A program made the translations under genes and the position numbers. Shown one piece after another: positions 3,772-23,711 of a stretch of 64,000 nucleotides of DNA. The notes under the pieces were generated by a model that had not been told where the DNA came from, did not search any database, and saw only the letters and a program-made list of their open reading frames with translations. How positions within the stretch are numbered: the first letter of the stretch is position 1; each line of letters begins with the position of its first letter. The DNA comes from Kudoa neothunni (lineage: Eukaryota; Animalia; Cnidaria): the NCBI GenBank assembly GCA_964304625.1, contig OZ199840.1, forward strand, positions 6,383,120 to 6,447,119. Reading direction: 5' to 3'.

Positions 3772-3883
3772 GTACGCACCTTTTTGCCCAAACCACGTAG
3801 ATTCTATTTTTGTTTATCTCAAACGAGTGTAAAATTTAAATTTAAATAGTTGAATTTTAGTAGGAAAATTATTAATAATGGAA

Positions 3884-6275
3884 TCTAACGTGTGGATTAT
3901 AAATAGAGTTGCCCCGATACCAATAAAATTTCGTCTTTTAAAACCAGTATATAATGAAGAAATGTTTGTCAAATTACATTAAAATGTATCAAGATATCTT
4001 TAAATTGGCTCTTTAAAATTATTCTTATATTTTTATAAATCTTTACGCATTTCATAATTTAATAATACAAAAAACATATTTGGTTTGCCACATTTATTAG
4101 ACCTGTCAATAAAATATCAGGTAATAGTAAAATAGGCGGGGCCTAAAAAACGTCCTCTTTCACATGTTTTTTCACAGTTCTTTTTTCACGATTCTTAACA
4201 ATAAAATATAAGAATATGGATATCAAAAATTCAGCTCAAAATAATAACTTTCAAATTTTGAGAATTTTTCATCCGATCGCGGTCGGATACACGTATAATC
4301 TCCATCTTTTTTCAACAAACATTGAATTCATCTCTAAATTGTTTTGATAATCATTCATAAATTGGTTCTATTTCATATTTTTCCTCATATAAACACAAAT
4401 TTTACAATATCAAATTTAATTACACAGGTTTTTTATATGTTAGGCATGAATAGTTTAAAAACGAGAAGACAACTACGTGCTCTCTATATATTTTCTTAGT
4501 TTTCTCGGAGCTGATGAGTTTTTTTAATAATTAATTAACATTTTATTTTAGATCAACATTTAATTTCAACAGAGAAATAACTTAAGATAAATTATATTAT
4601 CACTTTTAAGCAGGAATTCTTACATGTGTGTTTAGTATAGCATTCGATAAACGTAAAAATGTTGTTATACAAAAACATAAAAACGAAAAAATCGTTATTT
4701 CTATAAAATAATTATTTTTAATGCAACATTTATGCACCGATATAAATAATAACCATAATTAACATATTGTATTGACATCTTGAAATATTCACAATTAGCA
4801 TATTTGGTCAAATTTGTTGTTAGTAAATTTTGGAATTTAAAAAAACTTATAAAACAATAAAAATATGGTTTCTATTATTTTTTTTAATGTTTTACACATA
4901 ATTAAAGGTAAAAAAATTAATACAATCATTTTTAAAAATTTGGTTTCTGAATTTTAATAATAAAAACTGAATTTCTTAATTTCCAATAAAAAATTTAATA
5001 GAAAATTATAAACTAAAATGAATCTTGCTATATTAATACCTATATTTAAATGTTCACAAAGTATTTTTATTATAATGAAAAATGAGATGTTAATGTGAAA
5101 TTTGCATTGAGTTTATTTTTAAAGTTAATTCATATAAAATTGTTTTATATCAATAATACAAATTTTGATAGTAATAATAAATAACTTTTGAGTTAATAAC
5201 TAAGAAAGAAACAAAATAATTCAAGGTTAGTTGATCAAAGCGCATTAAAGTTTATGCGGGGTCAAAGGATATTAATTTGAGCAATAAAAATTAATTTTCG
5301 TCTATTTTCTTCTATCTCTATCTCTATTACTTTTTCTATTTTCTTATCCCTTAAAAAGTTAGTGGTGCACACATTTTCCGAGCCGGTCCAGAATTCGATT
5401 TTAAAAATCCCCTGGGGAAAAAAATAACACATTAGATTGCACTTGAAGAGAGTTTAAATAATTCGGGAACGAAAATAAATATGACACTGACCTTAAATTA
5501 TTTAGCGTTGGTGCTGGAACGAGAAATGGTTAATTAAAAACGAGGATTGATACACTCCTGCACAGAAATAATCATGATTTAAATTTCGAAATCATAATCG
5601 ACAAAGTACGATACTTAAAAAAATATAGTTTGACTGATTCTATAAACCAATTTGAAACATTATATTTTTTTGAATGTTATAAAGAAACATAGCTATGCAA
5701 AATCTTCCTCAAACGAAGCTGGACAGTTGGGGCTAGTATCATAAAAATATGGCTAGCGAACAATTTAATTACCTGATAAAATATATTATTCATGGTTTGA
5801 TGTGTTCGTGAATAAAAAATATCAATCTCGCGCTAAATATTTGTTTTACCGTACTAAATTAATTAGTTATCCATGTAATGCATATCAAAACATTATTTGA
5901 GAAAATTAATAGTTTACAGACCGACAATACAATCAGTTAAATAACTTTATTAAGTAAAATCAGTAAATTTTAGAGTAATAAAACATTTTTTTGAATGACT
6001 GAAAATTTGGACGTAATCTCATTAGAATATAACAAACGTCTAAAACCATTGAAATTTAAAATGTTAGCATGCGTAGAACATGGTATCGGTATCGACGAGT
6101 ACTGAAATTTTGAGTACTCGTACTCGTTTTAAAAAATATAGGACCGGTGAAACCCTAATTATAAGGGTTGTAATCTACCAACCATATATGCGCGTCGAGA
6201 GTAATGCGGTATGGCATCATCCCTTTTTAATGCAAAGAACCCAGGTTCGAATCTCGATTCAGATCTTGTGTTACA
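3884..6275 (+). mobile_element. tRNA-containing mini solo-LTR copy 1, split by a hAT insertion
   Basis: 3884-3903 plus 6158-6275 reconstitute the element seen intact at 17736-17866. Ends TCTAAC.../...TGTGTTACA. Flanks TGGAA/TGGGA (4/5 TSD). Confidence 0.7.
3904..6157 (+). mobile_element. hAT-type element (TAGGGTTG... termini)
   Basis: Ends TAGAGTTGCCCCGATACC ... GGTGAAACCCTA. 8-bp TSD ATTATAAA/ATTATAAG. Its 5' part (3904-4062) recurs nearly identically at 18117-18332. Confidence 0.75.
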
Positions 6276-7466
6276 TGGGAAATTATTCCAAAATGAATCT
6301 TAAAACGCAATAATACTCGTCATTAGACATATTAAATTATACACTATATCCAGATTAAATGGTAAGGTGAATTTTTTTAAAATTTTTGGATCAAAATATA
6401 AAAACTTTTTTTCATATGGCACTGAAAATAAACAAGAAATAAAATAATATTTACAATTTCATAGAATTGACCATTTACTAAATTTTATCCCAATGTAAAA
6501 GATATAACTTTTATGAAAAATATCACTTAACCAAAATCTACAAATTATTTCTCGGCCAAAAAGTCTCAATAATATATTTTTAGTTATTGTAATCTAAAAT
6601 TGAGTTGTTTTACTCATGCTGAAACATAAAGAAAGCACAAATAATAATATCCTCGCGCGCAGCTGGACTGTGAATTATCGGTTGTAAGTTGCAACGTTTA
6701 GTAAACATTTTTTTGGACGTTCCCGGAGGGATTACGTACTATAGGCTACCTCCTGTATTACACATGCTCATTTAAGAATCTTACTCTGCGATCGTAACGA
6801 ACTCACGCACGAACAAAATCAGTTAGAATTGGTTTCCTCTTTGTCAAATTTTTTAATTAGGTAGTTTAAAATTTTATATATAAACACGCCACACATTTAT
6901 TTTGGAGATTCACTGTGATAACATTGAGATAATTCAATTAAAGATTAAGTATAACTTAAATAAGCTAACATAATTAAATCTAATTGAAACCAATGTTGTT
7001 TATAACCTCGGAATAATGTATGACTTAGTCTAACTAAAATTACAACTTATAAAACTTGCATAATAGGAGATACACTTTTATTCACATAACAAACAAATAA
7101 AGGGAACGAATTTTAATCACACCGTTAATCTTTTCTTTACTCAATATACTGAAAAAAAGTTTCTATTTATTCTGATTGACTCCAATAAATTAAAAATTTT
7201 TCTATATATAACTTAATTTACTGCAAATAAAAAATATTACAGTTGTTCCTGAATATCAGTTCCAGGGGATTAAAATACAAGTAAGCGCGAGATTAAATTT
7301 TAGAATATTCGGGCATTCACCTACAAATTGTTTTGGGAATTGTTCGTTTAATTCAATATCCAATTTGAAAATATTTAAGCCATAGTTGCTCCAATTCAAA
7401 ACAAGTGATCTTATCGGTTCTGCCTAGTTGTAACTATGAAATGTAGGTTGAATTGGTTTAACCAAT

Positions 7467-17481: not shown

Positions 17482-17735
17482 GATTGCCGAAATAGGCCGA
17501 TGATTTTTTTTTAATCTTAGTCCTCTTGTTTGTCTGCGATATTTAATTCTATAACTGTCCGTATGTAATATGGAATGATAGAATATAATTATTTAAAAGA
17601 ATTTTGTCTAAAATAAATATAAAAATTCAATCTGTAGCTATGGCATCTAATATTTTGGTTATCGCGTGGAAATTTAACGCTAGTTTAACCTAACTATCAT
17701 TTATCTACGTTTAGTTAATTATTTATTACCCAAGA

Positions 17736-17866
17736 TGTAACATGTGGATTATAAGGATTGTAATCCACCAAACATAAATACGCGATCGAGAGCAATGCGG
17801 AATGTCACCACCGCCCTTTAATGCAAATAACTCGGCTTCTAATCCTAGTTCGTACCTTGTGCTACA
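17736..17866 (+). mobile_element. tRNA-containing mini solo-LTR copy 2 (131 bp, intact)
   Basis: TGTAACA...TGCTACA termini. Perfect 5-bp TSD CAAGA (17731-17735, 17867-17871). Internal tRNA-like A/B boxes. Confidence 0.75.
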
Positions 17867-18116
17867 CAAGAACAATGCCATTGGGAGGACATTTAAATTT
17901 TATTTAGATAGTATTGAAATTAGATGTTAGTAAATTTTGGATTATGTTGAATTGAGTTAATCGGCAATTGGAACAATTTGTATTTTATTTAGGATAAAAG
18001 TAACTCTATTACTATAGAATTCGCATAATGTTCCATAAATAATCATGGCGCATTTAATATGAAAAATTTGATATAGGCTATTTATGCATAGATTTTCAAT
18101 TTGAAAATATATTCAA

Positions 18117-23662: not shown

Positions 23663-23711
23663 TTAATGATAATAACGCTTGTTCGAATCCCAATTCAGAT
23701 CTTGTGTTACA
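23663..23711 (+). mobile_element. 3' half of tRNA-containing mini-LTR (copy 3)
   Basis: TTAATG...GTTCGAATCCCAATTCAGATCTTGTGTTACA matches the 3' ends of copies 1 and 2. It begins at the TTAA of the anticodon loop, where the piggyBac ends. Confidence 0.65.

Follow-up and report, generated by a model that had tools for sequence, protein, structure and literature searches.

The window analysed here, a stretch of 64,000 nucleotides from Kudoa neothunni (contig OZ199840.1), carries three copies of a 131-bp repeat, all present where a preliminary description of this DNA had placed them. One copy is intact, one is split by an insert and one is a 3' fragment. Their features, including the target-site duplications (TSDs), are as follows in window coordinates.

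17731-17735, plus strand: left TSD CAAGA of the intact copy, identical to 17867-17871
17736-17866, plus strand: full 131-bp solo LTR, TGTAACA...TGCTACA, the intact copy
17744-17768, plus strand: conserved 5' hairpin with arms GTGGATTA and TAATCCAC
17788-17853, plus strand: degenerate tRNA-like segment of the intact copy, with a box-A-like block GAGAGCAATGCGG; no Rfam tRNA match at E<=10
17816-17822, plus strand: anticodon-loop-like CTTTAAT of the intact copy
17835-17845, plus strand: eroded box B of the intact copy, GCTTCTAATCC
17867-17871, plus strand: right TSD CAAGA of the intact copy
3879-3883, plus strand: left TSD TGGAA of the split copy, a 4/5 match to 6276-6280
3884-3902, plus strand: 5' 19 nt of the split LTR copy, TCTAACGTGTGGATTATAA
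3896-3903 and 6158-6165: 8-bp TSD of the hAT-like insert, ATTATAAA and ATTATAAG, a 7/8 match
3904-6157, no strand assigned: 2,254-bp hAT-like non-autonomous insert with termini TAGAGTTGCC and TAGGGTTTCA, of imperfect TAGRGTT type
6158-6275, plus strand: 3' 118 nt of the split LTR copy, with box B GGTTCGAATCT at 6244-6254
6276-6280, plus strand: right TSD TGGGA of the split copy
23663-23711, plus strand: third LTR copy, a 3' fragment ending TGTTACA, with box B TGTTCGAATCC at 23680-23690

The perfect 5-bp TSD (CAAGA) reported for the intact copy can indeed be read directly on both of its flanks. The split copy has flanks of its own, TGGAA and TGGGA (4/5), which were absent from the preliminary description. 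Its proposed interruption by a hAT element stands as far as the insert, the hAT-like 8-bp TSD and the termini are concerned, but no transposase ORF was found in the 2,254 bp and no ORF of at least 80 aa is left there; the label hAT is therefore drawn from TSD and termini only. The interior sequence that had been quoted for the intact copy does exist in the window, but it is that of the split copy (6196-6256), and the box B of the intact copy is eroded.

We searched the whole genome (40.26 Mb, in three large contigs and one small one) with both ends of the repeat. The 5' 21-mer gave 71 matches at up to two mismatches, compared with none for the reversed control, and the 3' 19-mer gave 83 matches at up to three mismatches, compared with three for its control; merging both sets with the BLAST matches left about 117 loci. 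The BLAST alignments are bounded precisely by positions 17736 and 17866, indicating that the unit is sharply bounded and has no longer SINE body. Nearly all copies have the termini TGTAA...TTACA, beginning TGTAACATGTGG..., with an inverted terminus of only 7 bp, and the ends given earlier as TGTAACA...TG(T/C)TACA are consistent across copies, sharp and of TG...CA type genome-wide. Perfect (5/5) 5-bp TSDs flank 12 of the free copies (CAAGA, GTAAG, CAAAT, CTTTG, AATAA, GTAAA, CAGAT, ATTAC, GTATT, GAAAC, ATAAA and GAAAG) and a 4/5 match flanks nine more, whereas a control in which the comparison was offset by 12 nt downstream, in a 26-copy subset, never gave a match of at least 4/5. The insertion targets are AT-rich, and a clear motif was not seen among them. 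A fixed 5-bp TSD, previously taken as an integrase/LTR hallmark, is thus a property of the family, and lies in the 4-6 bp range of TSDs made by LTR retrotransposons. Together with the TG...CA ends, the lack of an A-tail and an inverted terminus of only 7 bp, it supports integrase/LTR-type insertion and the earlier assignment to a non-autonomous LTR element. About 117 miniature LTR remnants make up the 131-bp repeat family, which is real and old and whose members were inserted by a retroviral-type integrase. The earlier argument against a SINE likewise holds. tRNA-derived SINEs (SINE2) are also short interspersed repeats with a tRNA-like A/B box region, but their TSDs vary in length, their 3' tail is A-rich or a simple repeat and they lack TG...CA ends, whereas here the TTACA end is sharp, the TSD is fixed at 5 bp and matches stop at 131 bp.

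One locus, L024 (contig 1, minus strand), holds two LTRs in direct orientation, of 137 bp and 130 bp, separated by an internal region of 251 bp. Its outer flanks, TCAAA and TTAAA, match as a 4/5 TSD, while no TSD flanks either LTR individually. Two nucleotides past the 5' LTR lies TGGTGACAGGGGT, which agrees at 11 of 13 positions with the reverse complement of the tRNA-Leu(CAA)+CCA 3' end, and GGGGAA adjoins the 3' LTR in a PPT-like position. With about 117 copies in 40 Mb, we estimate that chance alone would place about 0.04 pairs on the same strand less than 400 bp apart. The preliminary description had proposed looking for two-LTR copies with a PBS and a PPT. One was found among the roughly 117 loci, with an imperfect PBS, but its internal region is unique: a second copy was not found in the genome, and the region resembles neither the interior of the Gypsy element described below nor the PPT-like flanks at L014 and L104. 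The two LTRs are 77% identical, no closer to each other than random family members are.

Three other pairs of copies were considered as full-length elements and rejected. The pair C3:9562439/9569316 flanks a NUP210-like host gene, the pair C1:14020381/14024680 belongs to a 4.3-kb tandem duplication whose detected blocks are 97-100% identical, and the pair C1:13407007/13416563, whose members lie 9.5 kb apart, lacks retroelement ORFs between them in a 10-kb stretch that leaves the second copy outside. The tandem duplication (L120:1-6601; contig 1, 14019300-14025900) has a 4.3-kb period, includes an LTR copy and reflects either a recent event or an artefact of the assembly. Pairs with identical flanks of the same kind are L011/L012, L008/L009 and L096/L097, which lie 28 kb, 45 kb and 49.5 kb apart, respectively. 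Beside the NUP210-like gene (Ig_NUP210 domain, ORF 5739-7214) we also observed a tandem array with a 10-nt period (L032:3963-4313).

The TGT...ACA ends with their short inverted repeat could also be those of a MITE of an integrase-like cut-and-paste DNA transposon of the Ginger2/TDD type that makes 5-bp TSDs, as Dictyostelium TDD-4/5 do (PMC2836005). A Ginger2-type element does lie near the window.

L033:522-2871 (contig 3, 6 kb beyond the window): Ginger2-type element with 145-bp TIRs (99% matching) and one 619-aa ORF, in TATATA

The TIRs of this element, however, start TGTTACC and its TSD is of the 4-bp type, in line with the 4-bp TSDs in RTATAY of animal Ginger2 (PMC2836005). The 131-bp family has a TIR of 7 bp only, against 50-180 bp in Ginger2/TDD elements, no sequence in common with the local Ginger2 and varied targets that are not TA-palindromic, and L024 has direct repeats with PBS-like and PPT-like sites. 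Since termini, TIR and TSD all differ and long TIRs are absent, Ginger2 was rejected as the source of the family, and we regard a Ginger2/TDD-type MITE as very improbable.

The same contig also carries a retroelement whose LTR has its 3' end in common with the 131-bp repeat.

L034:548-4418 (contig 3, 19 kb beyond the window): small Ty3/Gypsy element, ORFs broken into pieces

The broken ORFs encode protease, RT, RNase H and integrase domains. The LTR of this element, TGTGACGTCA...GTGTTACA, starts TGTGACG and is 83 bp long rather than 82, with its boundary set from solo copies; Gypsy LTRs typically begin TGTNR (PMC2836005). The PBS agrees with tRNA-Leu(CAA) at 18 of 19 positions, so that the primer tRNA is the same as in L024, and 5-bp TSDs (AACCA, ATGAT and TCGCT) are present in all three informative copies. 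A search for an autonomous element with the same termini as the repeat had been suggested; the last 8 nt of the Gypsy LTR (...GTGTTACA) are identical to those of the 131-bp LTR, and the first 8 match at six positions. Solo LTRs occupy four of about seven Gypsy loci, indicating that solo formation is common in this compact genome. Separately, TGACGTCA, a CRE-like palindrome, was observed at the extreme 5' end of the Gypsy LTR.

Taken together, we propose with moderate confidence that a Helenus-like TRIM, moved by the resident Gypsy family, left the 131-bp units behind as its solo LTRs. An old, small non-autonomous LTR retrotransposon (TRIM) would have been the source of the units. Its cDNA would have been inserted by a Ty3/Gypsy-type integrase, leaving TGTAA...TTACA ends and 5-bp TSDs, and recombination between the two LTRs would later have deleted the short interior in nearly all copies. 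The helper is probably the Ty3/Gypsy family of the same genome, with its tRNA-Leu(CAA) primer, its ...GTGTTACA end and its 5-bp TSDs; agreement in PBS, terminus and TSD points to mobilisation in trans. The LTR itself would carry a degenerate tRNA-derived patch, made up of a box-A-like block, an anticodon-loop-like CTTTTAA and an intact box B 45 nt away from the first. If so, the TRIM and the resident Gypsy would form a concrete helper-passenger pair with a common primer tRNA, LTR terminus and 5-bp TSD. Some features of L024 run counter to the TRIM reading, namely the 77% identity of its LTRs, its imperfect PBS and its unique internal region.

So does the youngest subfamily. Whereas free full-length copies have a mean pairwise identity of 80%, a 119-bp subfamily with a 2-nt insertion and a 12-nt deletion has a mean identity of 93% and is the youngest. 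It has about eight members by match span, and of the five that were examined, four have perfect TSDs and the remaining one a 4/5 match. All five are single units, each with its own 5-bp TSD. This pattern favours a reading in which the 131-bp unit is the whole element, that is, a SINE-like transcript that is reverse-transcribed and inserted by the Gypsy integrase and has no internal region. Single units outnumber two-LTR copies by about 117 to 1, and the 7-bp inverted repeat mimics the Gypsy U5 end at both termini. However, a mechanism for the priming and completion of such a cDNA is not known, L024 has the classical order LTR-PBS...PPT-LTR with one outer TSD, and the Gypsy LTRs of the same genome are also mostly solo. 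We consider a single-unit element improbable. An 'integrase-dependent SINE', whose short and possibly Pol III-made transcript would be inserted by the Gypsy integrase and for which L024 would be a by-product, is slightly less probable still. The solo LTRs of a Gypsy-mobilised TRIM remain our preferred explanation.

About 25 copies have common flanks and are embedded in a ~530-bp Tc1/mariner-like element with inverted termini TACAGTGCAACCTC....

L005:1314-1822: ~530-bp MITE carrying an LTR copy; also at L011, L013, L029, L030 and about 20 more

The 5-mers TCCTA and TCGTA (4/5) adjoin the embedded unit. The common MITE flanks indicate that these copies go back to one old insertion that was amplified passively by the MITE, and they were not counted as independent insertions. 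They make up about a fifth of the 131-bp family, with a mean pairwise identity of 83%.

The preliminary description had placed a tRNA-Lys(UUU) core at the centre of the repeat, a proposal that our data do not sustain. ARAGORN found no tRNA gene in the repeat, and Rfam gave no match at the gathering score and no tRNA match at E<=10 in three copies. With a covariance model built from 29 host tRNA genes and run with filters off, the copies scored 8 bits over an 11-nt T-loop/box-B stretch or 7-11 bits at 'full length', no better than flanking noise, as against 50-71 bits for real host tRNAs. The significant tRNA covariance-model score on which the preliminary description had made its proposal depend was therefore not obtained. 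The predicted anticodon and acceptor stems of the copies are unpaired. Parentage by tRNA-Lys(UUU) was also rejected by comparison with the host tRNAs: over the whole length, Arg(UCU), His(GUG), Thr(UGU) and Ile(AAU) match best, and Lys(UUU) ranks 23rd of 31. The host tRNA-His has 19 of 19 nt of its T arm in common with the repeat. The 3' part may resemble canonical metazoan tRNA-Lys(UUU).

A sequence-only profile HMM built from the same host tRNAs matched 49 of 72 copies with scores of up to 17.1 bits, compared with at most 5.7 bits in ten shuffle sets. These matches are colinear and mostly gapless, span model positions 28-70 and align CTTTTAA exactly with the anticodon loop and GGTTCGAATCC with the T loop. 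Among the 39 full-length copies, the full box B GGTTCGANNCC is present in 19 and GGTTC in 31, a strict box A (TRGCY) in one and a relaxed form ([GT]RGC..[AT]G.GG) in 16; the modal spacing from the box-A-like block to box B is 45 nt. Column conservation is 0.92 in box B versus 0.78-0.85 in its neighbours. The patch is not a tRNA gene but is probably derived from a tRNA or a SINE2 and worn down to its loops, and any Pol III promoter activity of it is putative.

Several observations run counter to this tRNA part of the interpretation: the cloverleaf went undetected in the copies, TRGCY occurs in one of the 39, and box B is altered in the youngest subfamily. They agree with a different reading, in which the units were left as ordinary solo LTRs by an LTR retrotransposon or TRIM driven by Pol II and the tRNA-like patch is an incidental captured fragment, or is a hairpin with a box-B-like 11-mer and no promoter role. 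Box A is poor, the 11-nt T-loop motif accounts for most of the profile score (8 bits), and this motif lies inside a hairpin of about 10 bp, AGGTTCGAA...TTCGGACCT. In the youngest subfamily the 12-nt deletion collapsed this hairpin and turned box B into GGTTCGGACCT. As the subfamily spread after this change, an intact box B was unnecessary for the last spread, and the deletion weakens the likelihood of a Pol III promoter role. On the other hand, the anticodon-loop-like motif and box B stand gapless in tRNA register, their box-A-like partner lies at a tRNA-like spacing from box B, and box B is more conserved than the columns adjacent to it. In addition, the calculated number of perfect box B matches, with ten specified bases, that chance would give in 131 bp is ~2.5e-4. 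An incidental patch is, in our judgement, unlikely, and we continue to favour a Helenus-like TRIM with a tRNA-derived segment. Folding of the whole unit as RNA gave z = -4.6 in one copy and was not significant in two others.

A tRNA-like stretch in the LTR of a miniature non-autonomous LTR retrotransposon has been described as Helenus (TRIMp3; Kojima 2024, Biology 13:119; PMC10886601), which is known from fungi, a single plant and six phyla of animals. The suggestion that the 131-bp repeat is possibly a new lineage thus gives way to a kind of element that is already published. In Helenus, boxes A and B are conserved, isotypes often disagree and none contains a functional tRNA; families known only as solo LTRs, or failing tRNA prediction, have been described, and PBS types of animal Helenus are shared with Gypsy (PMC10886601). 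The 131-bp family is similar in LTR length (131 bp versus 120 bp in Helenus-1_SMo), in its GGTTC box B in 31 of the 39 copies with an ambiguous isotype and no functional tRNA, and in a PBS type common with an autonomous Gypsy (tRNA-Leu(CAA); 11/13 in the TRIM and 18/19 in the Gypsy). It is also likened to Helenus, by description, in surviving mostly as solo LTRs with TSDs. The family can be placed within the published Helenus type and does not constitute a class of its own.

It differs from Helenus in three respects. The statement in the preliminary description that animal tRNA-type families make 4-bp TSDs proved correct: Helenus TSDs are 4 bp in animals and 5 bp in fungi and plants (PMC10886601). 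The 5-bp TSD of the 131-bp family in an animal host is thus like that of fungal and plant Helenus and of the local Gypsy, TSD length by kingdom being taken here as a descriptive trait and not as a strict criterion. The genome itself encodes a Notch LNR domain (48.6 bits), which is specific to metazoans; families of nematode cuticle collagen and of arthropod cuticle protein were looked for and not found, in searches whose controls were uninformative. Furthermore, the Helenus box A, TRGCY ... YGG, is not seen here in its strict form beyond the single TRGCY copy, and one two-LTR copy stands among the roughly 117 loci. What sets the family apart is a TSD of 5 bp in an animal host and the scarcity of full-length copies, of which almost none remain; these traits open no new category, and a Helenus-like TRIM family with a tRNA patch is added to a very compact 40-Mb animal genome.

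Promoter-like segments derived from small-RNA genes are also found in the TRIM LTRs of Cassandra in plants and Ajax in nemerteans, and Ajax has 5-bp TSDs and a tRNA-Leu PBS as well (PMC10886601). Their segment, however, derives from 5S rRNA (box A/IE/C) and not from a tRNA, and Pol III transcripts have been shown for Cassandra, whereas the 131-bp family is known here from its sequence alone. PbTRIM of ants, the bivalve TRIMs and ta-TRIM of Echinococcus are similar in their short LTRs, short non-coding interior, mobilisation in trans and many solo LTRs, but are not known to carry a tRNA-like box-B segment.

Our search scored only 38 tRNA genes in the 40 Mb of this genome, as against about 117 tRNA-like box-B sites in the repeat family, which could mislead tRNA or Pol III annotation. 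Two further observations concern host tRNAs. The tRNA-Leu(CAA) gene (L112:50-159) has a long intron and was mislabelled Ser(cga) by ARAGORN. At L010:911-972, beyond the limits of the element, the host-tRNA model gave 15.4 bits to a 62-nt segment through its acceptor and T arm only; this segment may be a tRNA relic.

Finally, all copies, like window positions 17744-17768, contain a conserved, perfect 8-bp hairpin, GTGGATTA-N9-TAATCCAC, near the 5' end of the LTR. Its column conservation of about 0.94 is among the best of the interior columns. TAATCC is a K50-homeodomain-type site, and the hairpin may therefore serve the LTR as a promoter or enhancer element.
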